NCBI GenBank assembly: GCA_047495785.1 | Contig: JBLDXI010000054.1 | Location: 3,534,001 to 3,598,000, forward strand | Source: Lepidodermella squamata | Lineage: Eukaryota; Animalia; Gastrotricha | Direction: 5' to 3' | DNA: 64,000 nucleotides | Shown: positions 1 through 30,456 of the stretch, piece by piece | How positions within the stretch are numbered: position 1 is the stretch's first letter | How the letters are laid out: each line of letters starts with the position of its first letter | Made by a program: the position numbers and the translations under genes | Notes under the pieces: generated by a model | Told to the model about the DNA's origin: nothing | Seen by the model: the letters and a program-made list of their open reading frames with translations, nothing else | Databases searched by the model: none

Positions 1-2044
1 GAATGGCGTAAGCAGTGAAATTTAAGAGCACGTGTGCCGTCAGGGTGACATAGTGCGTAAACAAGCGCATGGAAGGTTTCTTGATGTAGCCATTTTCCAA
101 AGGTTCAGAAAGATTCCAAGGTTCGAAGATCCATGAAAGAAGAATCCAGGGAATAATCTCGATCATTCTCAAACGTGATGGTTCCGTTGTGCGAAGGTAT
201 CCTTGGCACGATTGAAATATCAAATTCAAAGGAGAACCAGAAACCTGGAAATTCCATATTTTGGGGAATTTCGGAAATTAGTGCCGAAGCCTTAAATTTA
301 GCGCTGGAACAAATGGTCTAGGCACAACCATTTGTCAAGGCGAAAGAACACGGAAAGTCTCATAAAGAGGATTTACTGTGAGAAATCGTTCGACCAGGGT
401 GGCCACTTTCAATAAACATTGACAGCCTGGGAATTTGGATCACAGAATGTTACCAAATTGCAGCTTAAATTCCATTGTTTACATCGAATTTTTTTACAAT
501 GCCCCTGCTCGAAAAATAATCTAAGTTAGGTACCATGAAGCTCACCAACTAAGTTACTCCGGGTACTCGAAATTCGGCTATGGCTTTGGGGTTCGGAGAC
601 TTCGGGATCAGGTAAAATGGAACGGTAAAATGGAATGAAATGGCGTGGTGCACAAACTCAGATTGAAAACTAGCCCCAACCTAATGCCTTCATGATGTTG
701 CGAACCCTTGCGTTGCTGAAGAAATTGATTTGTTGCGGTGTTTTTTCCAGTTACAACGTGGTGTTTTGTGTTGCGGCAATGGTTTTATGCGGAGGAATTT
801 CGGCAAAATGAAACTTTATGATGTTCGCTTGCTCCAAACAGAGTGAGAAATTCCCATCATCAGATCGTATTTTCGTCATTTTTATCAATTTTTTTTTTAA
901 AAAAACCCGATTTTTGTCTGTTGTAACTTCCATTTTCAACCGGATACCGTAAGCAGACATGACCAAATCTACGCCGAATTTCAAATCATTTTATCTTAGC
1001 ATACAACCGCTATATTCTGGATATTTAGCGAACAAAGTGAATTAGGATCGATTTACGGTGTTTTCGGACTTAAAATGATTGATCATCTGGGAACGGTGGA
1101 CTTTGAAAGTTCTCGAAGTATGATTCAGCCGAATACCATGAGAAAACGGAAGGAGATAATCACATTCGGTGAAGCGCCGCAAATTTAGCATCAATCCCAT
1201 TGACATCAAAATTAATTCATCCGGTCCGCTGTCACTTATTGAACGCGCCGTCATTTGAAAGCGATGAATCCGGTGCAATAGGCGCTAAATAGTTGTATCT
1301 TGACACCTTAATTTCGCCGCGACCAAAGTGTCGCCGCCTTTGTGCGTGCACCGAGTCGAGTGGCGTCAAGTTGCGGAACAACAGTTGGCGCCACGCTGCA
1401 ACTGACGTCTAATTACTAACAAGTGAGAGCGGGCGCGGACACAGCTTAGCCACTCATTACCTCGCTACCGATCACGCACCACGGAAACGACAATGTAACA
1501 GTTGCTCGCTTTTGTTTCCAGTCTCATTTCCAGTCTCTAATTCGGCGTTGCGGGCGTCCGGCGAGGCGCTCGCGTTAACTCGTGAAATTCTAGCGCGCGC
1601 CGCGCCTGGGCGCCGTCATGCGAGCTAAATAGTTGTTTAATATAAATACACGCTCGATTTCAAAATCGCACATTCACGCGATCGTCAAATTTGCAGGCCA
1701 TGTCATCTACCAGACTTCATTATTATAGGCTCCATCGCGTGTCCATCTAACAGGCAAATCGGCTATCGTGGCTTGCCCAAAATAATCTAGGCATTTTCGG
1801 CTTTACAAATATCCAGGGCGCGCTCGCCCAGGGTTTTATTACAATAATTATTGCGCTCCCACTCCGTTTCGATTGTTTACGAGCGCGTTCGATTTTTTGT
1901 AACATTAGCGGCATCGTTTGGATCAGCAAAGAAGCGTTGATAGATAGTAACCAGACTCGCTTATACCGAGACACTACTATTGCCAGCCCAGTTTACTTTA
2001 CTTTTATTTTTCTGCCTTATTATAGAATATTGTTAATCTCGGCA

Positions 2045-3629
2045 ATGAAGTTTGTTGTTATCTTGTTGTTGTTCATCGCGTTGACGACCGCCACCCAGCG
2101 AGGTCAGCAGTCGTGGTGGGACTCGCTAGCTGCCGTGGCTAATTTCAAAATGGCTTTCGAACAAGCCGTTGAAGAGCAGCAAATTTTCGAAGAGTCGTAC
2201 TGCGACGAAATCTTCCAAACGCCAACTCAGCGCCGAATTTGCCGCGCTAACGTCGCTGCGGGTAACGCTGCCGGTCTAGTTTCGGCTCTCGACTCTGCTG
2301 TTCGGCTGGCGATCAGGGAATGCAAGGAACAGTTCAAGGCCGAGCGTTGGAATTGCCCCATCGAGTGGGACCCAACTCTGTGGACCGACGGCTTTTCGCC
2401 TGAATCGATCACATTTCTTCAAGAAGGTAATTCGATACTGATTTTCGCTAATTTTTCAATTAATATTAAATTCACTCTAGGTACAAAAGAGGCTACATTT
2501 TTGGTGGCCACCATCAGCGCCGCAATGACTCATACCATCGCCCACGCCTGCGCTATCGGCAATCTAACCGAATGTTCCTGTACCCAGGCCTCGCCTTCAT
2601 TTGTCGACAACTCGCTGGCTATGGCTGCGACTACGACCGTGGCTACAATTTTCTCGAAAAGCTCGCTGCTGTCTGGCATTCGTGAGTCGTCTACTACGTC
2701 AGTCGCCAACGCCTGGCAATGGGCCGGTTGCTCGGAAAACATCCAATTTGGCCAGTTCCTCAGCCGTAAACTGCTCGACCCGCCAGCGCTCGAACGCGTT
2801 CGCTCCGACCCTAGCGACCTGCCGGCGCTTGTCCAACTTCAAAACCTGCAATTCGGCCGTAAAATGCTGACATCGCAACTTCGCGTCAACTGCCGGTGTC
2901 ATGGCTTGTCGGCGAGTTGCAGCGTGAAGACCTGCTTCCGACAGCCCTCACCCTTCCGCCAGGTCGCTGTCTCACTCCGCGAGAAATACGAACGGGCTAT
3001 GCTGGCTAGCGAAAGGCCTGAGTTGAAAGCAGTCGCCGTCGTTGCCTCATCAGTCACCAAGCCACGCAAACAGAAGCCGACAACGACCGAGGCAGCTAAT
3101 CTCGAAGTTCAAGACGATACTGGTCTGATCCGGAATCGTTTGATTCGTCGCAAGGCGAAGGATGACAGCAAGCAGTCGATTACATCAGCGTCATCGAAAA
3201 GTATCATGGCTTTTCTCCGAAACGATGTCATCCTCCGAGACAATCTTATCCATTATAAAAAGTGAGTTTTTTTTTAATTTTTTATTCCTAATTCAATCTT
3301 TTCATCTTAGATCGCCGAACTTTTGCGAGCCTAGCCCTGAATGGCCTCACGGAACTCGCGGTCGAGAGTGCGCCAAGCCCAGCCAATCAGAAGCGCCCGT
3401 CAATTCGCTCGCGCAACGGCTAGGCATGTCAGCAGGCGAAATCGAAGCACCACTTAGCAACAGTACGACGACGTCTACATTAGCCTCTTGTGACGCTTTG
3501 TGTTGTGGTAGAGGTTACGAAACTAAATTAGTATACGTAGCCGAACCTTGCCGGTGTAAATTTCAGTGGTGCTGTGAAATTAAGTGTGAAACTTGCTGGA
3601 CAACAAAAGAAGTTCATACCTGTAAATAA
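2045..3629 (+). CDS. wnt9: Wnt family ligand, most similar to Wnt9 (3 exons: 2045-2426, 2481-3261, 3311-3629)
   Basis: Signal peptide MKFVVILLLFIALTTA. Wnt motifs ECKEQFKAERWNC, G|TKEATF, WQWAGCSEN, CRCHGLSASCSVKTC, SPNFC, CDALCCGRGY, CRCKFQWCCEIKCETC. GT-AG introns 2427-2480 and 3262-3310 keep the frame. Subfamily call rests on remembered Wnt9 similarity (QRRICR, CFRQPSPFRQV...KYE) and is less certain than the family call. Confidence 0.9.
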
Positions 3630-4153
3630 CCTTGTTTAGCTTGCCTTTTATTCTATGTCTCAAATCTCAAATTGTATTTTATAATAATCGACCTTATGTT
3701 ATGTACGATCGAAATATGATTTTTATAGCAAATCATGTGACAAAAAATTCTAAAAAAATATTTAGCATGTTATGAATCGCATGTGTTCCGATGCCCGATA
3801 ATTATGGTTGTTGAACTGTTGGAAACAAAAATATCGGTGAAACTGCTGCTATGAAACGAGAAAAAGCTCAGCCGAATGCAATGTCTGTAAAACTAACTGC
3901 ATGTTTTTATATGTGAATTTTGCACTAATATTTGTCATAACTTCTGCGCGCATTTTGAATGCTGAAAAATTATACGGTGAACAAATAAAACGATTGGAAT
4001 ATTACAAAAAAATGGCTTTATTTCTTCGATTCGATAATTAATAGCACGGGTGGTTTAATTGTATTACAAGCTATTAGTTGGCCTATGCGTTTTGAGATCA
4101 GTTGTTGTAAAAAATGTTCACGATAGTTGTACATCAAGCGAATTGGAAGAAAT

Positions 4154-4459
4154 TTATTTACCCAAATAGCGGGCTCGTTTCGAGATTTCAGTACAGCCGA
4201 TTTCTTCCCGCCTCTCGGCTGGGGTAGATTCGTCGAGGCAAAGTTCAAGCACCGAAATCCATTGCGAGACTTGATCGTCAAGGCTAGGGTCAGATCGCTT
4301 TCCAAGATACCGAGCTCGTTTGCCGAGATAGCGGGCTCGCTTGAAGGCCATCAACGGGTCGGATGCGAAGCTGTTGTCGCTCGAGCTGCTATCACCAGCA
4401 TAGGCTACAATGGCGAAAATCGCGCAAACCAGCAAAATCGCGAGAAGCTGAAATTTCAT
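4154..4459 (-). CDS. Neuropeptide precursor encoding 3x ARYLamide plus a C-x14-C spacer peptide
   Basis: Signal peptide; KR-ARYL-GKR-ARYL-GKR and terminal KR-ARYL-GK*, i.e. canonical dibasic cleavage and Gly amidation sites; single coding exon. Confidence 0.92.
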   Translation of the reverse strand: MKFQLLAILLVCAIFAIVAYAGDSSSSDNSFASDPLMAFKRARYLGKRARYLGKRSDPSLDDQVSQWISVLELCLDESTPAERREEIGCTEISKRARYLGK

Positions 4460-5811
4460 GTTTCAAATTGTAGCTAAAATTAGTTTCTAGGAAAATTGTA
4501 TATTAAGCAGAAATTATCGCAATGAAAAAGATTTATAGGGCCGGCCGATTCAATTATTCGAATTAAGCAATCGGAGTTCTGACTTGAATATGAATTATAC
4601 GCAACGCCTCCAGTCACGTTCGCATGCCATCGTGTTGACAAAGCCATTGCGATGGCAAACATATCAACGTCGGTGCCTGTCGCCCGATTGACATCGAGAG
4701 GATACTCAAAGTTTGATTGTCGGCTGATTTTGGCGCTTTTTTCTACCGCGCGGCTGTTTTTTCATCGCACCCACTTATTGGCCAGCGCGACGTGATTAGC
4801 ATCAAAACTACCGCGGGTTTCGATGACATTGACGCTGCGATAACAAAAAAAGAGCGGAGGGAGGGGGCGTGTACTTTATCAGAGACATGATTAATTTTGA
4901 ATTATTTTTATCGCAGCTAAAATAATCGACGGAAACGAAAAAATTATATGAGGGAGAGGCGGAAAAATTCCCGTTTCGCAGATTAAGCGTGAATATGCAA
5001 AAGTCACCTTTTGCTGGCCTACGCATGCGAAAAAATGGCTAAGGAAGTCTGGTATCTCAAGATAAATCGGCGGTTATTAAATTTATTTTCCACCAGGCTT
5101 TTTTTTGGCGACCAGACGGTAAATTCAATAAGCGATTGTGGGAGGCTTATGACGTATGACGGCGTAATTTTATCAATGGAAGCTATTGCGAAAAAGATTT
5201 CTGAGAATTTTTAAATTAAATAATTTTTTTTAAAATTTGATTCAAAATTCTGACGTCGCTACGCATAATGTAATAACACACTTTTCGGACTTGAATTGAC
5301 CTGTCTCCTGTGAGAATTCCCAATAAAAAATAGTTAATTAGCTGAAAAAGGGAGTAATCATTCTTGGAAAAATTGAAAAAATAATGGGACGCTTTTTTTC
5401 TAAGGTTTCATAATGTTTTCCGGACTGCTTGCACCCTATCAAACCTTTTTATTATGCTCCTCATATGACGGTTGTCAGCGATAAGTACCATAACATTGCT
5501 AGAATAGCAAGAACAGTTGAGGCCGACCGCTATAAGCGATCACTTTCTGCGGCCGTTTCGAGTTCGTAAAGGGATTGAAATCCCAGGTTTTACTATAAAT
5601 CTAACAGAGCTACACAATTATCGGCTCAAATAAATTGAGCTGCTTGCAAGAAAAACAACAAGTATATCAGGAAACACAAAAGCGGATAATGTTTTCTCGC
5701 TTATTTATTAACGCATCGTCGCCTCCGCCAGGTTAGCCGCATAAAATATAATACAAAATCACGATTTTATGTGCAATTTCGAGTTCAAAGGAAGAAGCCA
5801 TTCTGAGTTCG

Positions 5812-7167
5812 CTAGTTTTCGTTAAATTCCAAAACAGTATCGACGTAAGTTTTCGAGACAAAATCGACAATGCACAGGTTGATTGTCCCCGGCGAGAGGG
5901 AAGCGTTTGCTTTCTTGGCCTTCAGCCAACCGATGAAGTTGTCCCGCATTCCCAACGCTACATCGTCCTTGAGATTGCCAGCACCGGAAAATAACGACCC
6001 CGATATATCGCTAGCATCGCCCGAACCGACCCCTGAAAACAGTTTATCAGAGTGAAAAAGCATGGCTGAAAAATATTTTTCCAACCTTGATATTCGAGGA
6101 AAAATGATGTTCTGTCATCGACAGGGGTAGTGAAACGCTTGATTCCTTGGTCTAGGTAAGAGGAAACTGTTTGCCAGTTAGAAGAGCCAGCCCATAGCCA
6201 AACTATAGACGCACCTGAGAAAAAATAAGGCGATAAATAATGCGACTAAAATCCAAAAAATTACTCACCCGGTGGCCAGAAAACAGACGGTGGCCGGCGG
6301 CCGTATTGATTTTCTGGAACGTAGGGCGCAACGTCGAAAATGATGATTACATTGCCGATTCTAGGAGATCGAGACGCCAGCCAATCCAGTGAAATGCTCT
6401 CCAAACTGCGAGTTTCATTTCGATCGGTTTGATACGCCAGCAGAGTTCCATTGAAAATTTGCTTAACGCGGTCATTGATTTGTTGGTAAACGGCCCGATT
6501 GAAGTTGTAGACGTGGCGAAAATAGAGAATAATCACTTCGTCGGGATGCGACTTGGCAAAATCCGCAATAGGAATCATTTCCGTGGCGAAGGTCCTACCA
6601 TAAAGGCCTGAAAAATCTTGTATCTTTCCGTTCTAAATAATTTGTTTTTTAATTTTTACCATGAACAATTCGAATTCTACCAGTGGATTGTTGATAGCCC
6701 AATCGAATATCGAAATATCGTATCCCCATTTTGAGTTGGTCCTCCATGTCCAGATCCTGAGTTTTCGACCACCCGTACGAAATTGTCGACGACGTATTTC
6801 CAAGATTGGTTAAAGCCGAACTGACGAGACGCTGACCCTGCCTGTCCGTGTTAGCTTGCTGCGGATTTGTATTCGCGCTATTAGCCGAGTTGACCATATT
6901 TGCAATCATGTTGAAAACCGGAGCGGCCATTCGCGAAATTCCACCAAAAGTATCAACCCATTTCAGATCGCTTGAATCGCCGATTTCGCTATTTGGGTCT
7001 AAATTACTAGTGCCGCTATCGTGAGACCCGGGAATTGCGATTCGAGTGATTGGCCTAGATCTAGCTGGACCCTGCAAATCCCGCATCCAATTTTCATAGT
7101 CGATTTCAGCTCGGCTTAACGCAGCAAAAATGCTGCCAACAATTAGAGTAATCGACCAAAATCTCAT
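5812..7167 (-). CDS. plcxd: Secreted PI-PLC X domain-containing protein, copy A (exons 7167-6660, 6607-6269, 6214-6086, 6032-5812)
   Basis: PGSHDSGT, SKTQDL..QL..GIRYFDIR, IVH|GLYG, HPDEVIILYF, INLCIVDFV; three GT-AG introns of 52-54 nt restore the frame; hydrophobic N-terminal signal peptide. Confidence 0.88.
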
Positions 7168-7290
7168 AATAAAAGCCTAAATAGAAATTTATTTACAATT
7201 TATTCGAAAGCAATTGTGTAGTCTTAATCTATCCTACATTTTTAGTGAAAAATTAAGGGTTAAATTCAGAAAAAAAGTTTGATGTGACGT

Positions 7291-8441
7291 CTATTTTTTC
7301 CCTGGGAGAATGTTCAAGCTGAGTACAGCGTCGACGAAAGGTTTGTTGACAAAATCAGTCGGGCATAGGTTGATCACTCCTCTAGGCACGAATCCTTTCT
7401 TTCCCGTCAACCATTGCGTGAACCTAGCCGTAGTTCGATTGGCCATCGATGCCTCCAGGGTAGCTGATGGGTTGCTCAACAAATACCGAGAAACATCTTC
7501 ATTCGACGGCGTAGCAACTCCTTGAACTTCGAGGAAAAACGAATATCGATCATCAGGGTCCGAGTATGATTGAACTCTAGTATCGAGATATTCCATTATC
7601 GAGTCAGGGTTCGAATTGCCAGGCCACAACGAGACGATAGCTCCATTTCTCGGCCAATATCGCAATGGTTTCGAAGTGTTGGACTGAATTTCGTCGTAGA
7701 TAATGATAACATTGCCTTGCTTATCCCGGCTGACAGTAGACAGGGTAATATCCATTAGATCTCGAGGCGTTTTGTTCGGCCTTTCCGATCGGATGAGAGT
7801 GTTACCGAAAATTCCCTCGAGAGCATCCCCTAATCTCTGATGATAGCCATCATTGAACCGGTAGAATTCTTTGAGGTAGAGCACGATAACTTCATCAGGG
7901 TATCGTCTAGCAAAATCAGCGAGAACTCCGAATTCAACATCGATCGATCGGCCGTACAGACCATGGGCGATTCTGAATTGTTGGGTTGTCGATTGAAAAG
8001 CAATCCTTGCCTCGAAATAACGGATGCCAAGCGCTAGCTGATACGTCGTGTTCATACGTTGCGTTTTCGACCAGTTGTATGCGATTGTCTTCGGATCTAG
8101 CGAGACCTGTCGACGGGAGAATATCGACAGAACGCCGTTGATGGCGCCGCTGAACGGGCTGAGTTTGTTCACCCAATCGAACGAACCCTCATCGGCTACC
8201 TCGCTGTAGCTGTCCAGGTAATAGGTGAAGCTATTATGGGAACCTTGGAAACTTTCGAAATTAAAAGCAAATTAACGGATTTATCTATTTCACCCGGAAT
8301 AGCTAGTCGAGTAATTGGAAGAGACCGGACATCGTCTGAAGACTGTTTCATCCAATTGACGTAGTTTCGAGATTGACCGGCGACATTTTGGTAAGTAACC
8401 AGTGCCAATATCAGGATGAAAAGACTTCCTGATAGCTTCAT
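7291..8441 (-). CDS. plcxd: Secreted PI-PLC X domain-containing protein, copy B (2 exons, intron ~8244-8293)
   Basis: LPITRLAIP|GSHNS, SKTQ..QLALGIRYFEAR, IAHGLYG, YPDEVIVLYL, INLCPTDFV; signal peptide MKLSGSLFILILALVTYQNVAG; clear paralog of copy A. Confidence 0.88.
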
Positions 8442-8885
8442 AGTTTAAGTAATATTCGTTGTCTCGGATTTGCAGGTGAAATTTGGTTAGTAAATTACAG
8501 CATTTAGTTTTAAGAGCAAACACAGCCTCGAGCAACGTCAGTTGCGCCCACGTCGGGTGACAACACTCGCTCTCCACAGCACGTTTTTTCCCCTTCTGGC
8601 AAGCTTCGTTATATTTGCTAACCGCTTTTGAAACGTTAATTATCAACTTGTCGGTAATAAAAGACAGTTTACATTAGAATATCTTTTGTCGAAATCACGG
8701 CGTAAGCTTTGATGAAGTTCAAGTCGAGAATTTTCATTAGGTAATAAACCCCAGTGAAAATGCGTCGATTTTGGAATAATATGTGTTTTATTCTTATATA
8801 GCCTTTCAAAAATTTGGCGTACAAAAAAGCTCTTCGCTCGAATTGGGGTCATTTCAAAGCTTGTAACAAAGCGATTTTTTTATCT

Positions 8886-9512
8886 TTAGCCAACGTAGCG
8901 AGGTTGTCCGCGACCCTTTGACGCCGAATGTCCGCCAGCTCGGACCATTGGGTTGAAAAATTTGCAGCCACCTAGAAAAAAACAGAAAAGATCAGCGTCC
9001 TTATAATTGAGAAATTCCAACTAAATCCTGGATGTACTCATATTCGCTCATACTTAATCTGACCCTAAAATCCTGACTAATTGCCCAATATATCATTACT
9101 GAGGGCGTCAAAATCTCCGAGATTAATTAAGCTGGTTTAACCTTGAATTTTTCCTAAATCCCTGAATTTTTCACCTTAGATTTCTGAACTGAAGGAATGC
9201 TCAATTAAAACTTGTTTTAACCCAAGGTCTAAGGTAACATTGCTTTAAGGGCATATAATTCAACTGAATCTTACCTGTTCGACAAGGTATAACCTTGCCA
9301 TCTGTATAAAGCTGAGCCAAACCTCCGTCAGGTAAGCGAATCAGGTTAGGGTAAGGAATCGACTCTTCTTCCTCAACTGGGTTCATTTCCAAATCGTCCA
9401 TCTGATGTGATTCGAGGCTTCGTTTTAACCTGAACATTGCAGCTCCTTCCGCTGCTACAACAGCTACTACGGCGATAATGCCGACACAACATATTAGTTT
9501 ATCTGATCCCAT
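8886..9512 (-). CDS. Secreted peptide precursor (107 aa) ending ...CRTGGCKFFNPMVRAGGHSASKGRGQPRYVG* (PRYVamide); exons 9512-9275, 8971-8886
   Basis: Signal peptide, RLKR furin site and acidic spacer. Donor AG|GTAAG at 9275/9274 and acceptor TTTTCTAG|G at 8972/8971 join in phase 1, giving a C-terminal Gly before TAA. The second exon is not in the ORF track. Confidence 0.78.
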
Positions 9513-10138
9513 TTTAAGCTAATAAAAACTGTAAAAAAAATAATTTGTGCGATGAAGTGGGAAACGGGCGGGTACGTCTGGGGTGCGGAAACCCCTGCCC
9601 AGCATAGCGTGATAGCTAATCGATGCCAAAACAAAACAGAGGGTGGGAGTGGGAATTTTAAGACACAAAACTCGTGTTTGGCTTCTGAAAATAATGAGAC
9701 ACACACACGAAAGAAAAATTGCGGTCGTTATTTATTATCTGTTGAAGAATGCTATCGAAATCGCAAGGTTTTCGCTTTATTAAATCAAAATAATATGATT
9801 GGATTGAGATGGAAAAATAAGACTTAACAAAGTATATATTGTTATAATATGCTGCGAGTGCGTGATAAATCGCGCTCATACACCGCTTTCGCTCTCGGAC
9901 TAGTCGGGAAAAAAATGGCGCGGGCGGCAGGCCGATCGAAATCACATCGAGACGCGTTTTCAAATCCTAATATTATTATTAATTATTTCTCACGCGATAT
10001 GCTATAAATTAGTCATATAGTATGGCACAACACATGCAGATGAGAGAAGACACAAAAAAATCGCCATTTTTCGATGATTTGATGAACAAATACGTTGGAT
10101 ACAACGAAAACCGGATTCCACCACCGCACGACGCTTGC

Positions 10139-10441
10139 TTAGCCGAAGTATCGAGAATGCTTGTTGTGCATGCGGGCCGCCGTCTGGTGATCTTCCGCCG
10201 AATGGTCGTCGCAACCGGCCTTTTCGTGCAAGTCATGGCTGAATCGGAAATCTGAAAACAGGAATATTTTTTATGAATTTTTAATTCAGATTTTTTCCAA
10301 CACACCTTCGCAAAATTGGCGCAGTAATAGGGTTTCCATTGCTGCTTCATCGATGGGGTCAGCTCTTACGGTCAGCAGGAAAGCGAAAGCGAAAACCAGT
10401 ACGGCAAACATCACGCTCAGTTTCGAAAAGTTGGAAATCAT
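10139..10441 (-). CDS. Secreted peptide precursor (82 aa) ending ...HNKHSRYFG* (RYFamide); exons 10441-10306, 10251-10139
   Basis: Manual translation: MISNFSKLSVMFAVLVFAFAFLLTVRA-DPIDEAAMETLLLRQFCE|DFRFSHDLHEKAGCDDHSAEDHQTAARMHNKHSRYFG*. 54-nt GT-AG intron 10305-10252; signal peptide; C-x14-C as in the ARYL precursor. Absent from the ORF track. Confidence 0.82.
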
Positions 10442-12034: not shown

Positions 12035-13294
12035 CTAATAGTTAACATTCTTATTGCGATAACAGACATTTTTTCCCGTGATCAAAGTTCGCAGAGAACG
12101 AACTAAAGCTCGAGGAACACGCATCAAAGATGCGGAAACTCTCCGATTACCGAATTACCAGGGTTTGGAGATCAGTTTCCAGACAGAAGTTAAACTTCGT
12201 GACGGTAACATCTCCCAAGAAAAGATCGGAAAGCCGATAGGAATAGGTTCTTGCTGCCATATATGGATCGATAATTTAATATAGCTGACGATAGCAAAAC
12301 GGATTGGATCAGCTTGGTCACCCGCGCCGATTTGGGATCAGCTGACAGCTAATTAACCGATAATTTCCTAACAATATCCTGTCGCTATTTATAAAATCAC
12401 AGACACATTTTATACTCCACACTTTTTTGTACAACTTTACGGCTAATTTGCTTTGGAATAGGATTTCGACTCATTTTTCTTCATTTCGCGTGCCGACATT
12501 TGGGGTAAAAAAAGACCCCACGGGAATGAAATGACCCCTTGTTTTTTTCACATTTTTACACATTTCAGAGCGTCCTACTGATTACGATTTTGTAGGAAGC
12601 TCAATTGACCTTTTAGTTACCTGGCCATACCTGGATCACCTGGGGTCGCGCTTTTTTATTTTCCTCCGTCCTTTACGACGAACATGATGGAAGGAAAAAT
12701 TTCATCTGAACCTCATCCCTCGTGATTGGTTCTAGATAATTCAATATACAAGGGTCAATTTTACCTGCCTAAACTCACCTATAAATACTAACTTGCCGTG
12801 ACCTCATTTTGGGACATATAACTGGTAGGTAAATGGTATTTTACGCCTCAGTCACGCTTACAATGTTTATATCGGAACAAAGAACCGGTCTGCTGAGTCC
12901 AGTGCGCACTCTAGTCGGACATAATTTCGACACCTTTGGGCCCACGGCACACGCTCAAATTCCAGGACGGTATACGCGCTCAGGTTCCTTTTCCTGAAAC
13001 GCTCATGTCGCGCAAAATGTTGATATAAAGACCTCTCATTCATAAAGTGAAGCGTAAAAAACTTGGGTCGAGCGTACGCTGGCGCCACCGGTGGCTACCA
13101 GTACGCAGGGTTCAAGCTTGGCGGCATTGTTTCACGTGTATCATTGTTATATAAAAATCCCACTCATATTGCGTGGGTAAAATGTTTGTTGCCCCTACAA
13201 CAGAGAGCGTAAGGCCTTAATAAAATAGCAGCAGCGTTGTAATTTTTGTCTTTTATAATTCACAAAAATTGTTCTTGTTGAGCTTGAGTCATCC

Positions 13295-13681
13295 ATGGCT
13301 AGAATGCATAACCATCTCAACGGCCATGCGAAGCACATTGTGGCCGATCAGGAGCAGAATGAGATCACGTGGCGTGTTAACCTCAAGCGGCGGGGCCATA
13401 ACGAACCTGCCCGAAGCTGGCTGGACCCATCAGATACTGCCTTCCAACGGGCTTGGCACTCGTTCCAGGTCGAAACCGGCATTTGGATCATTTCGCCTTG
13501 GGAAAAAGTTATTTGTGGTAAATTTAGACGCGATTCATCAAAGCCAATAATATTATTGACTATTTTTCTTCGTTCAGTCATCGTGATTTTCGGCACGATT
13601 TTCCTTCTTGGCTATTACTCGGTCAAAGGCGTGCTTGATCTGTCGCATGCGCTGGTTTCGTCGGCTGTTAAATCATCATGA
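13295..13681 (+). CDS. sptssa: Serine palmitoyltransferase small subunit (SPTssA/B-like); intron 13518-13577
   Basis: AWHSFQVETGIWIISPWEKVIC|VIVIFGTIFLLGYYS resembles the ssSPT pattern (Y.L.T..YMLEPWER + TM helix); removing a 60-nt GT-AG intron joins motif and TM. Confidence 0.7.
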   Translation: MARMHNHLNGHAKHIVADQEQNEITWRVNLKRRGHNEPARSWLDPSDTAFQRAWHSFQVETGIWIISPWEKVICGKFRRDSSKPIILLTIFLRSVIVIFGTIFLLGYYSVKGVLDLSHALVSSAVKSS

Positions 13682-18437: not shown

Positions 18438-20954
18438 TTATCGGTGAGTAGTCGTTACGGTTAATGTTCGGCTAGCGTAGGTTGCTAAAGATGAGGAAAA
18501 TCCGGTGAATCTTCGTGATTCGCTGTTTCGCCCGAATCTGCTGCGTAAAACGGCCCAATTTGTGATTAAAATCGTAGAAATCGACGTGAGCAAAAGGATC
18601 AAGCAAACGGCGACTTGACCAGCTACATTTGCCGAATTTGTTATCAAATAAACGAAAATTATCGCGAAGAACAATACAACGTGATTCATCCCTGCCACGC
18701 AAATGTAACGAGCTTCGGCAATTTCAGCGACTAGCAAGCTCGATTTCAGGCTAAGAAGGTAACCAGCTCCAGGGATTAGTATGACAAGTTGAAGTAGGAC
18801 TAAGCCGAGAATCCAGTAGCTAACGAAATTACTCTCGCAAACGATGATTTGGGGGGTGACGTAGCTATCAGCCGACCAGTTGAAGTACCTTTTACCCTCA
18901 GGTGTGGTTAGATGGCTGCGAATAGGGTCGAGACACAGCCATACAATTAAGATGACGAAATTAGCGGCTAGTAGTCCAACCTTTGACGCTAGCACAAATT
19001 TGCTCTGCCACATTCTTTCGTGTAGATATTTCAGGTCGTTCTGCCTGTTTTGAACCGCCAATTGCTCCTGGTATCGACGATTCGCCGAGGCTAAACGTCT
19101 GCTTTCGTTGGGATTTTTCTTCCTCTGGGAACTTGCGAGTCGTTGCTCGCGGTGGACGCGGTGGAAGACGACGACTCGGAAGAATAAAACCCCGGTAATT
19201 AGCGAGCATCCCGTCGACCAAAATGCGTATCGAAGATAGCATGACACAGACCCCCAAACACTGGCCCAATTCTCAACCATACATACCGCGCTAAGGTTGA
19301 TCATCAAACATCCGATAGCTACTTGGATTTTGTTGATTTTCAACGACTTTTTAGCTTCGGGAGGCGGGGTTCTACCTCGAGGCTCTTCGCTGAGGCGGGC
19401 TATCGCAATATTGGGAACTGTTCGAAACGAAAACACTAAAACAACAACTTCAGCTATTTGAATTAGTATCGTGAGAGCTTCGATAACCCTCGACAGATAA
19501 CCTTTTCCTTCGTAGTCGAGGGTGAATTGCTCTCCAGGGCGGTCTTTAACAGGCATTTCCTGCCAGACGCATGCAGAACAAACTGTATCAATAACATAGC
19601 TGTTCAAATCTGACGTAGAAAGATTGCTAAATCGTGTAACTTTGCTGAAAAATTCGTAGGAAGACGTGGAATGCTGCCACCTTAAAACAGCCTGAGGCTC
19701 ATTGTCCATTTCCAGTCTCCTTGAGTATTGCTGCACTCCAGATCGGAGGCTGACGTATCTGATACCAGCAGCACTTGCGTTTACGTAACTAGCGATTAAT
19801 CTAGGCTGGGTTGTGTAGTTCGAAAGGGTTAGGTTGGCTTTATTCAACACCTTTTCCGCATTGTCTAGGGTTAAAATGGCCTGGAGCATGGCGTCATGGC
19901 ACGAGTGTTTCATCATCTGATCAGCTGATCGGGATGAACCGGTCATAGTATCGAAACGACGCTCGAATTCTTGCAAATCATAGCCTAGAGCTGTTTTCCC
20001 GTTATCATTCGGAGCGTTTTGAAATGCCCCAATCCAATAACTGATATTTAGCTGGTCTCTGATTGCTGCTACCGAACAACCAAGCGGTAAGGACGCGATG
20101 TCCGTAAATGGGTCGATAATTCCTCCGGTTTGGATGATAAAAGCGAATCTTGGCCCGGTTATGTTGAATAAGTAAGTCTGGCATAAGAAATCAATTATAA
20201 TTGACAGAGTTGTGGTCTGAAGAACTATGATTCGTAAATCACTTGCTTTCAGATCTGCCATAACGTCATCGCTTAGATCGATAAAGATCTTGCTAAATTC
20301 AACCTTTACTCCGGCATTTTCTGCGATGGTTTGGAAGTTCTTCGCATCTGTGTAGTCTCGAGCATTCGCTGCATATCCAAGAAGAGCAACACTTCCCCAT
20401 TTTCCAACTTGTTTTATGAACTTGACCATGGCGTAGAGGGTGAGAGCTGCAGGGACTTTAATCCGGTACAAATTAGGATAGCTGACCCGGTTTCCAGCGA
20501 CAGACGAGCCTAAACATCCCGAGCTAATCCCAATCATGTCGATGTGTTGGAAAAAAGTCGCGAGTTGCTTGCAACCGACTGATGATGATGGGGAAATTGT
20601 TATTGGAGATCTGATCTCGGCAGAGGTTGACACACCCGTCTCTCCTCGCGCGAATCTTATTGTTGAGCTGATAGCGTCTATTCCTTGAAAAGATTCGTCG
20701 GCGTATTCGATTCTTAGCTTGTAATTCGGTAGTATTTCAGGTGAATTGTTTGCAGCATCAACGGCGATTTGCATCGACGCTTGACATGAGCGGCCGTCGC
20801 GAAGCCCATTTCCTGTTCTCTGAATGAAAGCAAGTATCACCAAAGTGTCTCTAGGTTCCTTTAGAGCTTCGTTGAATGAATTGAAGAATAACAAGAAGAT
20901 CAAGCTGGAGTGGATAACTGGCTTGCCGACCTTATCATGATTGTAAGGTTGCAT
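18438..20954 (-). CDS. Class C GPCR, GABA-B receptor-like (Venus flytrap + 7TM), intronless, copy 1
   Basis: QIAVDAANNSPEILPNYKL and YPNLYRI flytrap motifs; seven hydrophobic segments including WLCLDP, IVCES and EARYI typical of the GABA-B-type 7TM. First ATG is at 20954 (the ORF-track start 20996 is TTG). Confidence 0.88.
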   Translation of the reverse strand: MQPYNHDKVGKPVIHSSLIFLLFFNSFNEALKEPRDTLVILAFIQRTGNGLRDGRSCQASMQIAVDAANNSPEILPNYKLRIEYADESFQGIDAISSTIRFARGETGVSTSAEIRSPITISPSSSVGCKQLATFFQHIDMIGISSGCLGSSVAGNRVSYPNLYRIKVPAALTLYAMVKFIKQVGKWGSVALLGYAANARDYTDAKNFQTIAENAGVKVEFSKIFIDLSDDVMADLKASDLRIIVLQTTTLSIIIDFLCQTYLFNITGPRFAFIIQTGGIIDPFTDIASLPLGCSVAAIRDQLNISYWIGAFQNAPNDNGKTALGYDLQEFERRFDTMTGSSRSADQMMKHSCHDAMLQAILTLDNAEKVLNKANLTLSNYTTQPRLIASYVNASAAGIRYVSLRSGVQQYSRRLEMDNEPQAVLRWQHSTSSYEFFSKVTRFSNLSTSDLNSYVIDTVCSACVWQEMPVKDRPGEQFTLDYEGKGYLSRVIEALTILIQIAEVVVLVFSFRTVPNIAIARLSEEPRGRTPPPEAKKSLKINKIQVAIGCLMINLSAVCMVENWASVWGSVSCYLRYAFWSTGCSLITGVLFFRVVVFHRVHREQRLASSQRKKNPNESRRLASANRRYQEQLAVQNRQNDLKYLHERMWQSKFVLASKVGLLAANFVILIVWLCLDPIRSHLTTPEGKRYFNWSADSYVTPQIIVCESNFVSYWILGLVLLQLVILIPGAGYLLSLKSSLLVAEIAEARYICVAGMNHVVLFFAIIFVYLITNSANVAGQVAVCLILLLTSISTILITNWAVLRSRFGRNSESRRFTGFSSSLATYASRTLTVTTTHR

Positions 20955-21766
20955 AGAAATGACAATGCAGCCAATTAAATTATCGAAAGATGCCAAATTG
21001 TCAAATGCTGTGCTCTTCGCGAATTATCTGTTCAATTAGGATGTATATTACTTGTCCTTCGAAGATGAGTCGATATACATCTGCATCGTGCATCCGGTGA
21101 AACGTTAGCTTACCCATTCCTTACAGTCATCAGCGCCTTTTACACCCCGCATCATATCCGCATGCAGTCACGTGGAAATTTGATCCTGGCAATACCTTGA
21201 CGAAGGGGTAAAAGTAAAAATGGGGCGTTTTTAGATGGGCGGATCTTACTTTGAAATCTACCCGTAATTCATTTGGAAAATTAAGCATTTATCCCTGCTT
21301 AAAATAACTTCCTGTTTCGTTCCACAGATGGGTGATTGAGTGCCTCCGCCATATAGGTACAAACTCTTTTAACGTACATTCAAGCTCTGATGTCAGATCG
21401 ATAAAACTAGACTTAGACACAATGTCGTTCACTATAGAAATTTCGAAAATCAGCCAAATATTATTGACACTGTAGAATTTGAGGTAGGACCAGGGGAGAG
21501 ACCCGAGGGTTCTCCGATGAGTTCATTGTTTACATTGCTTATGTTCACCTTGAAACTCACATAAACAAGCCAAAATCAGACTTTTTCGGCCGAACTATCG
21601 ATATTCGTCATCAGCTCATAGAGGGCTTTCGAATGACACCGAATTTGGCTGGGTTCAAGTTTACCTGTGTCCGAATTTAGGGACTCTCAACTGTCCGAAA
21701 TTAGAGCTGTTTCCTCTAAAGCTTCTCAAATTTTATTTTCGCTTGAAACTGGTGTGTACTTTAAAA

Positions 21767-24259
21767 TCACCGATTATTAACTGTCATCGTTGTTCTCGTT
21801 GTGTAATTTGTCGAAACTGAATAGAACTGAGTCGCCCTTCTCGCTGTTTCTGGCCGGCCGTAGCGCTTCCTCAGCGTTGACCAGTTCGTGATCAAACTCG
21901 ACGTAGCAGACAGCGCAAGTAACACCAGGCTAACAGTAACTTGGCCACCCATTGTCGACGGATTTGTGATGAGATAAATGAAAATGATCGCAAAAAATAA
22001 CACAACGTGATTAACACCGGCAACGCAAATGTAGCGTGCCTCTGATATTTCAGCAATCACCATGCTGTTCCTAAGGCTGAAAAGGTACCCGGTCCCAGGC
22101 AGAAGAACGACAAATTGAAGTAAGACGAGACCGAGAATCCAGTAGTTTTTAAACCGACTCTCACAGACTATCATTTGAGGCGTCACGTAACTATCATCAG
22201 ACCAATTGAAATATCGCCTGTCTTCAAGCGTTAACATATTACTCCGAATAGGATCAACGCATAGCCAAACGATTAAGAGGGTTATATTGGCAGTTATTAA
22301 CAGCGTTTTCCCTATGGCGACGAATTCACTTCGCCATATTTTGGTATGGATATAGGCTAAATCAGCTGTCCTGTTTTGAGCAGCTATTTGTTCTTGGTAC
22401 TTTTTTAGAGTAGACATTCTGCTACTAGTCGGCTTTTTCCTCCGTTCCGAACTTGCCATTCGTTGCTCGCGGTGGAGGCGATGAAAGATGACTACTCGAA
22501 AGACCACGACACCGGTGATAAATGACGATCCAGAGGACCAAAATGCGTATCGAAGGAAGCACGAGATCGTACCACCTAGGCCATACGCATTTTCAACCAT
22601 GCAAACCGCGCTGAGGTTCAGCAAGAGACATCCTATCCCAATTAAGACTCTGTTCAATTTCAGCGTCGCAATCGATTCAGGCGGAGGCGTGTTGCCGTTA
22701 TTAGCCGGTCTAATATTAGACGACGGCTCCAGGCTAATTCTTCGGAATTCTTTCCACATCAATGAGATAATGAAAATTTGAAATAACTGGGTTGCAATTG
22801 CTAAAATCTCAACAATTCTCGACCCGTAACTTTTTTCGTCAGATTCAAGTAAATAGTACTCATCAGGTCTCTCTTTTGGAGGGTTGCCATTGGCTGTGTT
22901 CCAAGAAATAATCCCTTCAGGCTGAATGAGGTAACTCCTCAAATCCACTGAGCTAAAATTGCTGAGGCGTGTCACTCGGCAGAAAAATTCGTAACTTGCC
23001 CGATCACGGTTCCACCTTAAAACAGCTTGAGGCTCATCGTCCATCTCCAATCTCGGCGAATATCGCTGTAGGCCTACCCGAAGACTGAGGTACCTAATCG
23101 CAGCAGCACTAGCATTCACCGCATTAGCTATCAGTTCCGGCTCATCTTTATAGTTGGATAAACTTTGATTCATTTGGAACAGAGCCTTCTCAGCGTTATG
23201 CAGCGTTAAAATTGATTGAAGCATTGCATCGTGACACTGATGCTTCATCATTTCATCAGCTGTTTGCGTAGATCCGATGATGGCATCCAGACGTCTCTCA
23301 AATTCAGGCAAGTCATATCCCAAAGCTGTATTTCCGTTGTTGTATTCAGCGAGCTGAAATTCCCCAACCCAATAGCTGATATTTAGCTGATCCTTGACTA
23401 TTTGCAACGTGCACTCTTCCGGCAAGTCTTCAATGTCGAAGAAGGGATCGATAATTCCAGAGCTTGGAAAGATAAAAGCGTACCAAGAGCCGAACATGCC
23501 CTGAAAATAAGCTTTGCAAAGGAAGTCGACTATCACGGAGCGACTTGTTGTTTGAACTACTACGATTCGTAAATCACTAGCTCGTAGGGATTCCATTAAA
23601 GCGGCGTTGACTTCGAGAAAAATTTGGCTATAGTTCACGTTAATTCCTTCAGCTTCAGCAAGTTCTTTGAAGCTTTTGGTGTCAGTGTAGTCCCTTACAT
23701 TACCCGCGTAACCAAGTAATGCGACCGTTCGCCATTTTCCAATAATTTTGATAAAATCCACTATGACGTAAATTGTTAGGGAGGATGGGGCTCGAATTCG
23801 GTACATATTAGGATATGCAACCCTGTTAGCCTCAACGCCGGACCCTACGCAACCAGGGCTGATTCCAACCATGTTCAAATGATGGGAAAACTGCGCCATG
23901 TGTCTGCAACCTAAAGATGAAGCTGGGGCGACCAACAAAGGGGATTTAATTCCTGGCAGCTGATTGTCGTTGTCTCCGCGACCAAATCGAACTGAGGTTT
24001 CGATAGCGTCAATTCCCATATGGGCTTCATCGATGAATTTAGGAACCAGGAGATGGTTGGGCAGAATATCTGTTGAATTATTAGCAGCGTCAATGGCAAT
24101 CTGCATCGAAGCTCGGCACGCCGTGCCATCGCGAAGACCATTGCCTTTTTGCTGAATAAACGCCAGGATTACGAGATTTGTCCCATTTTTAACAGCGGCG
24201 CTCAAATAGGGGAAACTATGAACCAACAGCAAGAATATAGCTGAACTTCGCAGATGCAT
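21767..24259 (-). CDS. Class C GPCR, GABA-B receptor-like, intronless, copy 2
   Basis: Signal peptide; QIAIDAANNSTDILPNH, YPNMYRI, 7TM with WLCVDP/IVCES/EARYICV; colinear paralog of 18438-20954. Confidence 0.9.
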   Translation of the reverse strand: MHLRSSAIFLLLVHSFPYLSAAVKNGTNLVILAFIQQKGNGLRDGTACRASMQIAIDAANNSTDILPNHLLVPKFIDEAHMGIDAIETSVRFGRGDNDNQLPGIKSPLLVAPASSLGCRHMAQFSHHLNMVGISPGCVGSGVEANRVAYPNMYRIRAPSSLTIYVIVDFIKIIGKWRTVALLGYAGNVRDYTDTKSFKELAEAEGINVNYSQIFLEVNAALMESLRASDLRIVVVQTTSRSVIVDFLCKAYFQGMFGSWYAFIFPSSGIIDPFFDIEDLPEECTLQIVKDQLNISYWVGEFQLAEYNNGNTALGYDLPEFERRLDAIIGSTQTADEMMKHQCHDAMLQSILTLHNAEKALFQMNQSLSNYKDEPELIANAVNASAAAIRYLSLRVGLQRYSPRLEMDDEPQAVLRWNRDRASYEFFCRVTRLSNFSSVDLRSYLIQPEGIISWNTANGNPPKERPDEYYLLESDEKSYGSRIVEILAIATQLFQIFIISLMWKEFRRISLEPSSNIRPANNGNTPPPESIATLKLNRVLIGIGCLLLNLSAVCMVENAYGLGGTISCFLRYAFWSSGSSFITGVVVFRVVIFHRLHREQRMASSERRKKPTSSRMSTLKKYQEQIAAQNRTADLAYIHTKIWRSEFVAIGKTLLITANITLLIVWLCVDPIRSNMLTLEDRRYFNWSDDSYVTPQMIVCESRFKNYWILGLVLLQFVVLLPGTGYLFSLRNSMVIAEISEARYICVAGVNHVVLFFAIIFIYLITNPSTMGGQVTVSLVLLALSATSSLITNWSTLRKRYGRPETARRATQFYSVSTNYTTRTTMTVNNR

Positions 24260-25641
24260 ATCAGGTGATAAATGATCAACGCATCTCAGTCGTGTCGCTT
24301 TTAGCGAACAATCTTAGTCACGTTACTTAGGCAAAAGCTCGATTTCTGCATCCGGGGCGTGATCAAACGCATTTGTTGGCTGCAAACAGCTGAACTTATC
24401 AAATTACTCAATTTTTTGGGTAATCTTTGGCTTTTACTGATTGATTACAATCGCAGTTGAGGGTTGAAAGTAGCTACATAAAACTGAGCTAATTTGGACA
24501 TGAAATCCACGGCGATTCACGGAGTCAAACTGCGAGAATATGCAATAAATTATTAATCGCTAATAATTTAATTCAGCCCTTCTTTGTTTCAAATTCTCCA
24601 ATGCGAGCTCGAATTGGCCTTGAAATCAAATGAAGTGAACAAATAATAATAACTCCATCCTGATTAGACGATTTTTTTAATTTTATTTTTGTTCAGTCAT
24701 TCCTTTCCATTTATTTTTGCACAAATTTCTAAAACATCTTGAAGGTAAAACTTGCAAGATTCTCAATGAAGTTAAAATTGTCAACACAATGTGATACAGC
24801 AAAATGCCTTGTATATGCCCGCAGTCGCCGCCAAGTTCCGGACCCTGAACATTTCCGGTGCCCATAATTGTTTCAGCTAAAAGCAAGAAATGACGTCGTA
24901 ACTGTTAATTCAAGCCTAAAATTCACCCAGAGAAAACCGGAATTCCATCAAGACGTGGCGGCGACTGCGTCAGAGAGGTGTCAAGTCGAATTAATCATGG
25001 CATCTGCTCCGCGAATAACATTATTAACATCGACAAAACACGCAAAAATAATAGATAAAATAACAATAAAAAGGCCTGTTGTTGGGCTCAAGAAGACGAC
25101 AAGAATTCGATGATGATTGAAGGTTTTTAAATCGATGAATTCCAGCTGACCATTAAAATGTGAAAATGGGGGGTTTGGTGAAATTTATGAAATCTTGACA
25201 TTTTGATATTAAATTAAATTTTAATACATTTTAATTTTAATTTGATTTTAATTTTAATAGCGCTGAAAGAGATGCTGAGAAGTAGGTTGCAAATTTTACC
25301 AGAAATTACTTTCTGACTTTCTGAAAATTGGAATTTTATATGAGTAGTTTAAAATTTACCTCAAAATTCATTTAAAATGAGATTTTTTTCAATTTGTCCA
25401 TAATTTTTAGAGGTATTCTAAGGCAAAGAATCTCCCTCAAAATTCTCCTAAAATCTCCAGTCACCTAAAACGATAAGACTTGGCGTCTCTTCAGAAGGAT
25501 GGGAGGTTGGGAGAATTCAAAATTTACTTTCAAAATTGTTGGAAAATTCGCCACTTTTCACTTGCTAACGGCCAGCTCTTATCACCCCAGCATCATCAAA
25601 CTTTTATTTACATTATTCGGGCTATTATTCTCTCGCTTTCA

Positions 25642-28600: not shown

Positions 28601-30456
28601 ATTTTCAGGCCGATTGGTACTGCCAGTAATCCTAGTTGTGAGCAATTTTCGCAGCGGTGTAGTTGCTGATTGAGGATTTTTAGCCCTTTGAAAAGTACAA
28701 AACAGAATAATAATCAAAGAATTCCATCGGTTTTTTAAATATAAGAATAATAAAGATTTGTGTCCGGGATGGAACGTTTTGACCTCAAAAACACGTTTTG
28801 ACCTATTTTTATAATGAATCATAGTCATAAATTGGGCTGGCGGGAAGTAGGTCACGGTTAACGATAGGCAAATTAAAGATAGCGCGTGGTTTTTTTGCCC
28901 TATGAAGTCGACTTCAGCTTAGAAAATAACCCTCATTGCGTACAAGTCAATTTTCATCATCACCTCTGAGTATTTTGTGAAGAGGAAGTTTGTCTGTAAA
29001 AACTAGTTGTCGTTGAGGTAGTCGGAGTAGTTGAACGTTCGATCTCCGGCATCGTAGTCGGCCAAAAAAATGGCACAGTTGGCGTGTCAACCGCCCGTTG
29101 CGTTACGTCAAAATTCGTCATCAACGACGCCGCACCCAACGGATTCACCGCCTTACAAACCAGCCTGACTTGATTCGCCATTGAATAGCCGTTTGAGACA
29201 GCGACAGCCGGACGATTGGCCACGGTCAAAAACGCCTGGGATACGATGACAATGGCACCTGGTGACGACGGTGCAGCGTAGGCACTCGGCGAGATGACAG
29301 TTGTTGAATTTTCGACGAGAGATAACGCCCAGTTGTACTCGTCCTCGGCGCGAGGGAAGTGCCAACTAACAGACGCCACCGGATTTCCGGCGGCTGAACA
29401 CCGAAATCGCGTCTGATTTTTCTCCCTCAGCTGTTCGACATCAATTCCTATCACGCTAGCTGGTGAGCAGGTAAAATCGCGCAGAGAGTCAATTAGTAAC
29501 CCGTTTCGTTGAGACGGTAGTACGCAGACCGGGACAGGCAGGCCGTGGCCACTCGCCGAGCCGAATTCGTCGACCGGATTCAAAGACCTGGTTCTGTTGA
29601 GGCGATTCACAAAAACCCGCGCCAGCCATTCAACAGCGCAATCACACACCCAAGGATTTTTCGCGACGTCGAATAACGAAATTGCGGTGAAAAACGGCTC
29701 GAATCTCGGGCTGAGACTCGTTATCTCATTCTCCGACGCGACCAAGCTCTCCAGAGACATAGCGAGGGGTAGAAAAACGTCTGGGCTTAGTGTCGTCAAT
29801 TTACATCGCCGCAGTCTCAAACTGCGTATCGTCGCGTTTTCAAACGCCTTTTCCGAAAAAATAATACCAGGATTGTCGTCGAGGAGTAAAGCTTCGAGAT
29901 TCGTTGCGAAAAAAGCCTGGGCGTCGATGATTATCCCGCCGCGGTTGTATGACAAATCGAGAATGGCAAGTCTAGGCATTTGAGCGAAAGTCATGCCGGT
30001 CACGCGTCGCACTGAGCAGTTTCGTAAACTGAGCGTTTTCAGCTGCTGCCATTCGGTGAAGTTCGCGTACGTTATCGCAGTGTTGAACACGTTGTCGTTC
30101 AGCCACATCGCATGTGGCAGCGAGGTGGTGTAATTTGTGCGCCGATTTTTTGTTGGCACTTGGCGCAATGACCGCGCCGTGCAGTTGATGTAGCCCCGCA
30201 TGCACGCACATTCCAACGGGCAGTTCAGGTCGATGCGGTCGAGGTCGAGGATAGAACGAGGGATTGTCGAAACACCGGCGGGCAAGGCTTGGGTTGTCAC
30301 GAAGTTCCGCCGTTTGCCGCCGCCTCCTCCTCCGCCTCCTCCCTGCTGCCCGCCTGGTTCTGCGGCGTGGCATACCACCGCGAGGCTGATGATGAGCAGC
30401 AAAATGAGCCGGATGAAATTAGCCGTGTTGAGGCTTGGAAGTTCGCGGACGGCCAT
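25642..30456 (-). CDS. LRR + Ig single-pass transmembrane receptor/adhesion protein (exons 30456-28964, 28685-28250, 27746-27294, 26268-25642)
   Basis: Signal peptide, LRRNT CPLECAC, LxxLxLxxN repeats, LRRCT NPWVCDC, Ig FRCSAAGNP...W...VCKAVNPLG, Thr-rich stalk, TM GILVTVAVLIAIVMSSLGGCCLVIAC, low-complexity tail ending EEITFI; splice phases 2,0,0 are consistent. Confidence 0.88.

Follow-up and report, generated by a model that had tools for sequence, protein, structure and literature searches.

Do three small genes that lie close together in the genome of the gastrotrich Lepidodermella squamata encode one family of amidated neuropeptide precursors, and does this family correspond to any that has already been described? 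The question is raised by a 64,000-nucleotide (nt) stretch of contig JBLDXI010000054.1 (GenBank assembly GCA_047495785.1, positions 3,534,001 to 3,598,000 of the forward strand), hereafter the window, to which all coordinates refer unless another contig is named. An initial annotation of this sequence had proposed three minus-strand genes between 4154 and 10441 and had read them as a tandemly duplicated, diverged family. Here, the three precursor genes are designated g1, g2 and g3, the window species is designated W, and a second species (contig L001), in which a corresponding trio was found, is designated L. The reading we favor, with a probability of roughly 0.6, is that a single gene for a secreted prepropeptide was duplicated locally long ago, giving rise to all three genes, and that these would encode amidated, neuropeptide- or neurohormone-like precursors whose predicted products make up an undescribed family. 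The duplication proposed initially is supported by splicing, by the syntenic trio of the second species, by a common intron position and by purifying selection.

Gene structures and transcripts

All three open reading frames (ORFs) were confirmed on the minus strand, as were their R-Y-[L/V/F]-G(K)-stop tails. The g1 gene (4154..4459) is a single exon encoding a precursor of 101 residues, with a signal peptide at about residues 1-21 and then an acidic spacer. The spacer ends in the hexamer DPLMAF (4343..4360), a candidate non-amidated co-peptide that immediately precedes the first Lys-Arg (KR) site and is identical in L. It is followed by two KR-flanked ARYL-G copies (4301..4336; predicted ARYL-amide, whereas the orthologue has ARFL-G and ARYF-G), a segment in which Cys74 and Cys89 are separated by 14 residues (4193..4240), and a third KR-ARYL-GK at the C terminus (ARYL-G unit at 4160..4174), so that the last of the three ARYL-G-K units abuts the stop. 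The spacing of the Cys pair and its C-L-D start are kept in the orthologue, and the sequence of the loop between them differs between W and L. The g1 promoter (4520..4537) includes a TATA box, TATAAATCTT, which lies 78 nt before the ATG, and the identical 10-mer is found at -80 in the g1 orthologue.

Both other genes are split by one phase-1 GT-AG intron. In g2, exon 1 (9275..9512) carries the signal peptide, a KR site, an acidic propeptide and the first Cys, and a 303-nt intron (8972..9274) separates it from exon 2 (8886..8971), which contains the second Cys (C-x4-C), M-x-RAG, KG and the tail PRYVG-stop; the spliced product has 107 residues. In g3, exon 1 (10306..10441) encodes a signal peptide (about residues 1-27), a short acidic stretch and the first Cys, the intron (10252..10305) measures 54 nt, and exon 2 (10139..10251) provides a His-rich loop closing C-x14-C and the tail K-H-S-R-Y-F-G-stop, giving a precursor of 82 residues that ends in SRYFG-stop. 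The identical Cys spacing claimed for g1 and g3 thus holds, and g2 departs from it. A Gly preceding the second Cys, noted as a shared trait, is present in W but is kept in L only in g3, and is hence no mark of the family.

The signal peptides proposed for each gene agree with a hydrophobic N-terminal stretch in g1, g2 and g3 (best 11-residue hydropathy 3.05-3.49), with no second such stretch further on. Likewise, all six precursors of the two species have a signal-peptide-like N-terminus by hydropathy, small-residue cleavage contexts and no transmembrane segment. The tail motif RY[LVFIM]G[KR]0-2-stop occurs three times in the six frames of the 64-kb window, always within these genes, and 500 shuffles of the 6.6-kb region yielded a mean of 0.03 occurrences and a maximum of 1. 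These shuffles and the splice joints rule out chance ORFs. A Pfam scan of all exons of both species returned no match relevant to g1, g2 or g3, and the AlphaFold model of g1 is helical and of low confidence (predicted local distance difference test score 57.5).

Four public sequencing runs contain the stretch, and their contigs were aligned to positions 4380-10379. Contigs of runs X2 and X3, which represent two studies, skip exactly the introns of g2 and g3, together with four GT-AG introns within two PI-PLC-X-domain genes located between g2 and g1. The two junctions for which an RNA check had been proposed (9275/8971 and 10306/10251) are therefore present in both runs, and both are absent from the DNA run X1, which carries the complete stretch unspliced at a depth of 85 and may itself represent the source DNA. 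In X2, the g2 transcript terminates in poly(A) at 8769, following the AATAAA signal (8792-8787) by 18 nt. The 5′ end of g1 complementary DNA (cDNA) is marked by a template-switch oligo at position 4520, just downstream of the TATA box at 4537. X2 and X3 are not recorded as RNA runs, but their splicing, poly(A) and template-switch oligo identify them as cDNA. Transcript support for g1 spans 4380-4520, that is, the 5′ untranslated region (UTR) and the first 26 codons; contig depth is unsuited to ranking the expression of the three genes.

Several further features of the transcripts were observed. The 3′-UTR of g3 ends at 9902 in one run and at 9721 in the other (AATAAA at 9736); the longer form leaves about 200 nt before the ATG of g2 and includes a TATA-like site at 9838. 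The g2 contig match ends at 9520 beside an AG, which suggests either trans-splicing of a leader or a further intron, not observed here, in the 5′-UTR. Opposite-strand joints of low depth, seen in run X2 at 4980-5480 and 8996-9291, are most likely template-switch or amplification artefacts.

The orthologous trio of a second species

A full-library protein search with g1 gave a single match, P0001 (E 3e-6; L001:6834-7210), which is encoded on the environmental metagenome contigs L001-L003. These contigs are over 99% alike and were taken to represent one species for that reason. In L001, the block consisting of g3, g2, two PI-PLC-X genes, g1 and a convergent Wnt gene has the same order and orientation as in the window. 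Protein identity between W and L is 49-55% for Wnt and 33-44% for the PI-PLC-X genes; L is a species distant from W, and its source is likely another compact-genome gastrotrich. The gene models of L use junctions predicted from GT-AG and reading frame, without read confirmation.

The architecture of the three precursors is retained over this distance. The tails of L before the stop are LSRYFG (g3), GHRYLG (g2) and ARYFG (g1), the peptide units of its g1 are ARFL-G, ARYF-G and ARYF-G, and the Cys spacing of g1, g2 and g3 is 14, 4 and 14 in both species. KR and G-KR sites are conserved as well. In g2, the residues kept comprise the ring Cys, M-x-RAG, KG and RY-x-G. Separately, L g2 begins with an additional unit, RR-TGFLPAP-GKR (N-terminal; L001 2224-2335), a possible Pro-amide peptide that is absent from g2 of W.

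Residues and codons of g1 and g3 were compared between W and L. From DPLMAF through the second G-KR-S, 21 of the 23 residues of the g1 core are identical, 16 of them with different codons; since this identity persists despite 16 silent codon changes, the core is under strong purifying selection. The g3 tail is identical at seven of eight residues, with six changed codons, its loop at 15 of 21, and exon 2 of g3 has 61% identity to the orthologous exon. Judged by these codon comparisons, silent sites are almost saturated, yet the g1 and g3 peptides are much more highly conserved than Wnt, which indicates strong purifying selection on both.

Relationship, products and neighborhood of the three genes

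Are the three genes one family? According to the initial annotation, the first Cys of both g2 and g3 is closely followed by a phase-1 intron. The phase is correct in both, and the exact position is the second codon after this Cys (Cys1+2) in g3 and the third (Cys1+3) in g2. When L is included, the phase-1 intron splits codon Cys1+2 in L g1, L g2, L g3 and W g3, i.e., four of the five intron-bearing genes, with W g2 at Cys1+3 and W g1 intronless. With approximately 300 possible positions per gene, such a coincidence across three neighbors would be very unlikely by chance, the landmark (the first Cys) having been picked after the fact. In addition, the loops of g1 and g3 start with C-x-D and span 14 residues in W as well as in L. 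In W g1, the site at 4230-4235 (minus strand), compared with L001 7054-7109, has cleanly lost the phase-1 intron of L g1 and of both paralogues, a pattern of single loss.

Several observations weigh against a common origin or limit the case for it. Among 12 paralogue pairs aligned locally without the tail, only W g1/W g3 fell below p 0.05 (0.02); since similarity outside the tail is almost nil, the case for paralogy is made by linkage, the common tail, the Cys spacing and the position of the intron. The ring of g2 (C-x4-C) differs from those of g1 and g3, and exon 1 of g2 gives no reliable alignment between W and L. Moreover, the comparison covers one other species only, likely a gastrotrich.

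These points bring up the possibility that only g1 and g3 are paralogous and that g2 is an unrelated precursor ending in RY-x-G by chance, its plan being calcitonin/CGRP-like, with a small disulfide ring near the N-terminus, a length of about 30 residues and an amide at the C terminus. Such an origin would fit the C-x4-C found in both species, the 22-25 residues from the second Cys to the end, the lack of local similarity to g1 and g3 beyond the tail, and the W intron lying one codon off. However, in W and L alike, g2 and g3 are adjacent and have the same orientation, g2 retains RY-[V/L]-G-stop, and the L g2 intron, which is of phase 1, falls precisely at Cys1+2. A C-x5-C ring and a Pro-amide end characterize calcitonin-type peptides, and neither is found in g2. 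An independent origin of g2 is thus considered very doubtful. Because of the phase-1 intron position, the common tail and the linkage, an old local duplication of the three genes is supported, firmly for g1 and g3 and less so for g2.

Under this duplication reading, the ancestral gene would have comprised a signal peptide, an acidic propeptide, the first Cys, a phase-1 intron and a final exon encoding both the second Cys and, at the C terminus, basic-x-x-R-Y-hydrophobic-Gly. The additional copies in g1 may have arisen when its KR-ARY-x-G unit was repeated internally, and g1 would have lost its intron in W. In the established prohormone route, the signal peptide is removed by signal peptidase, PC1/PC2 cleave after KR or at single basic positions, the ends are trimmed by carboxypeptidase E and PAM amidates the terminal Gly.

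In both species, g1 contains the full set of basic cleavage sites and the Gly amide donor around short peptides, and would release three tetrapeptide amides (ARYLa in W, ARFLa and ARYFa in L, where a denotes the amide), in addition to a DPLMAF-ending peptide and a disulfide-linked spacer. Neither g2 nor g3 has a dibasic site before the amidated tail, and single basic residues only are found upstream. Of the products named in the initial annotation, the KR-flanked ARYLa is thus predicted here as well, and QPRYVa and HSRYFa, lacking an upstream dibasic site, are only possible. The g3 precursor may yield a long disulfide-looped, His-rich peptide ending in SRYFa, or the short tail; the long form seems no less probable than the short one released by cleavage at K, because there is no dibasic site and the His-rich loop is conserved. 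Similarly, the product of g2 may be either its tail or a peptide some 30 residues long that bears a six-residue disulfide ring and ends in RYVa or RYLa.

These products would most likely act as neuropeptides or neurohormones. The common end of the peptides of all three genes suggests one or a few related rhodopsin-type G protein-coupled receptors, which would read the R-Y-hydrophobic-amide end, and the three genes may differ in dose, stability and cell type. This would be an ordinary kind of system, a neuropeptide precursor handled by the standard route. The named top neighbors of g1 in the ESM Atlas are all neuropeptide precursors, which is weak evidence, as the scores (0.85-0.89) lie below the reliable score and the families are mixed; the g3 orthologue had no neighbors there.

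Amidation and disulfide loops are also common in exocrine and defence peptides, and the genes might therefore encode secreted non-neural peptides (of gland, gut, pheromone or defence function) with the same processing, co-located with phospholipase-like genes. The two secreted PI-PLC-X genes kept inside the block in both species would be in line with such a role. Nevertheless, venom or defence arrays evolve fast, and the near-perfect conservation, saturated silent sites and fixed set of three copies are better suited to a ligand of a receptor. A series of tetrapeptide amides separated by KR sites is, moreover, how neuropeptide precursors are typically built, and the propeptides are acidic rather than cationic-amphipathic. 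We regard a non-neural function as improbable.

The cluster of three within 6.3 kb proposed initially is linked and on one strand as claimed, but it is interrupted between g2 and g1 by two expressed, secreted PI-PLC-X-domain genes, which are neighbors and not family members. One (7291..8441, minus strand) has a single 50-nt intron and the other (5812..7167, minus strand) has three introns of 52-54 nt; both are syntenic in L and have weak Pfam support (PF00388). A protein search with a PI-PLC-X neighbor at E 1e-10 found no close homologue beyond W and L. The L001 pair lies at 3028-5790, and its first copy has a hydrophobic tail resembling a glycosylphosphatidylinositol (GPI) signal, which the W copy lacks. 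The Wnt gene convergent on g1 (1937..3629, plus strand) is a synteny anchor common to L001-L003; its long ORF in the window contains an apparent in-frame retained short intron, and a KAP3 gene lies beyond Wnt in L001. Elsewhere in the window, a small ORF at 13259-13681 (plus strand) weakly matches the serine palmitoyltransferase small subunit family (PF11779, E 0.005). In the segments 18441-24313 and 28235-30468 (minus strand), a six-frame scan revealed two long neighboring ORFs of 861 and 848 codons with similar N-terminal wording, as well as a secreted-looking ORF of 502 codons.

Comparison with known peptide families

Lineage-specific neuropeptide families are common, and a phylum that has not been surveyed can be expected to hold new ones at the lineage level. 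For gastrotrichs, hardly any catalogue of neuropeptides exists: published surveys include two gastrotrich transcriptomes, analyzed by similarity to known families, and no precursor of this type is among those listed in the portions consulted. Searches with g1 of 1.84 billion representatives and of a 5.8-billion set found nothing beyond the L orthologue, although low-complexity precursors may escape such searches, and the exact g1 sequence is absent from the protein collection searched. Word-indexed protein searches with the g1 alignment, the g3-orthologue ORF and the PI-PLC-X neighbor returned L proteins only; they cover proteins 0.55-1.75 times the query length, and their blanks are weak. Scans of JGI metagenome contigs gave 113 pattern matches for the g1 core and 179 for the last exon of g3, none of which was confirmed. 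Precursors with an amidated RY[LFV] tail are likewise missing from the consulted portions of a curated nemertean, brachiopod and phoronid list and of a mollusc-centred list with two gastrotrichs, and a planarian supplement contains no RY-x-G string. The earlier failure to assign the genes to a family is thus borne out by Pfam, two protein collections and the consulted portions of published spiralian precursor lists. As far as searched, the R-Y-hydrophobic-amide family is undescribed, and so far it is found in two species only.

With respect to g1, the nearest counterparts are the trochozoan F[V/L/I]amides (FLamides), short KR-flanked Arg-aromatic-hydrophobic amides in the same multi-copy plan. 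Their precursors carry RRFLa, GRYFLa (in a nemertean), RGYIa and PRYIa (Thiel et al. 2021, PMC8557429), ARYFLa is found in a scallop (De Oliveira et al. 2019, PMC6425005), and NFLa/NYLa precursors are listed for the gastrotrich Mesodasys. The FLamide receptor is known only from annelids and brachiopods. The whole cluster might accordingly be a derived gastrotrich FLamide branch, with g1 as a shortened FLamide precursor, g2 and g3 as single-copy offshoots, and a receptor of FLamide type. ARFLa, ARYFa and ARYLa are each one residue off ARYFLa, the L g1 peptide ARFLa ends in FLa outright, published members are short KR-flanked aromatic-aliphatic amides (PMC8557429), and the Mesodasys precursors would add a gastrotrich example.

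On the other hand, the listed FLamide precursors are many-copy and either lack Cys altogether or have a C-terminal domain rich in Cys, and C-x14-C followed by a terminal copy occurs in none of them (PMC8557429), whereas the precursors here are short, have C-x14-C or C-x4-C with the terminal copy after it, and are multi-copy only in g1. Among the eight peptides of the two species, which are mostly R-Y-[L/F/V]-amides, one (ARFLa) has an exact FLamide ending, four end in Y-L or Y-V amide and three in Y-F amide, so that Tyr rather than Phe is penultimate in seven. The family itself is defined by a loose motif, and no sequence match to any FLamide precursor was found in the 1.84 billion representatives or the 5.8-billion set. 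Descent of the cluster from FLamides is judged unlikely, though g1 may be a derived FLamide.

Other families resemble the trio in single features. Luqin/RYamide precursors are also small, contain a single Cys pair and have RY close to the amide, and their peptides adjoin the signal peptide and end in RFa, RYa or RWa, with Cys 10 apart and C-terminal to all peptides; flatworm luqins can lose the traits of peptide position and Cys spacing (PMC7041311). This assignment was rejected, as all eight peptides here have an extra residue after R-[YF], the Cys are 14 or 4 apart and the peptide follows the Cys pair; the tail, the peptide position and the Cys spacing all differ, in agreement with the distinction drawn initially. 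Precursors of the RGWamide/APGWamide type resemble L g1 in that several tetrapeptide amides precede two Cys with an intron between them (PMC8557429), and were rejected because GW-amide is absent and the Cys are 14 apart with a phase-1 intron, versus 20-30 apart with phase 0. The iPTH/PXXXamide/QSGamide type, in which a long peptide with SD at its N-terminus and Pro at -4 follows KR, was rejected as well (Pro at -4 only in W g2 and not in its orthologue, no SD motif), as was, for g2, the calcitonin/DH31 type, whose C-x5-C ring directly follows a dibasic site (C-x4-C, RYV/RYL end, no Pfam match). The DPLMAF hexamer of g1 resembles the buccalin/allatostatin-A core (LDPLMF-GGRLa in Solemya, LDPMMF-SGGLa in nemerteans) and FDPIMFa/FDPIAF of flatworm spp-15/npp-26 (PMC2953531), but it is single, not amidated and without a GGL-amide end, and a six-residue resemblance may be due to chance.

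What these genes offer is a well-supported new precursor family with defined candidate ligands that are cheap to make. One amidated end is presented by three precursor plans (a multi-copy tetrapeptide, a long His-rich disulfide loop and a small disulfide ring), and the trio is a compact natural example of how precursor architecture changes after duplication and of why such families cease to show any recognizable sequence similarity. No new mechanism is involved, as processing and signaling would take the standard prohormone route.

As for layout, insect RFLamide comes closest: a single amidated R-F-L peptide is located at the extreme C terminus after one Cys pair (PMC7179676), and its loop sequence ALHEA is, by eye, loosely like ALHIEAG/DLHEKAG of g3. 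It differs in having Cys 28 apart, a 12-residue peptide after RKR, a precursor of 122-211 residues and being known from insects, and it is an orphan (PMC7179676), whereas the trio has RYL, RYF or RYV tails and Cys 14 or 4 apart. FLamide for g1 and insect RFLamide for layout are thus the nearest known systems, as by-eye leads only. It is a long shot that an old protostome system to which the orphan insect RFLamide also belongs has survived among spiralians in the form of this trio, and that the cluster preserves the stages by which a disulfide-looped hormone encoded in single copy became a tetrapeptide precursor of FLamide type with several copies. If true, this would join two orphan families and point to their receptor, and such a possible link, along with a conserved trio in which three plans carry one message, is what the locus adds to the known systems.

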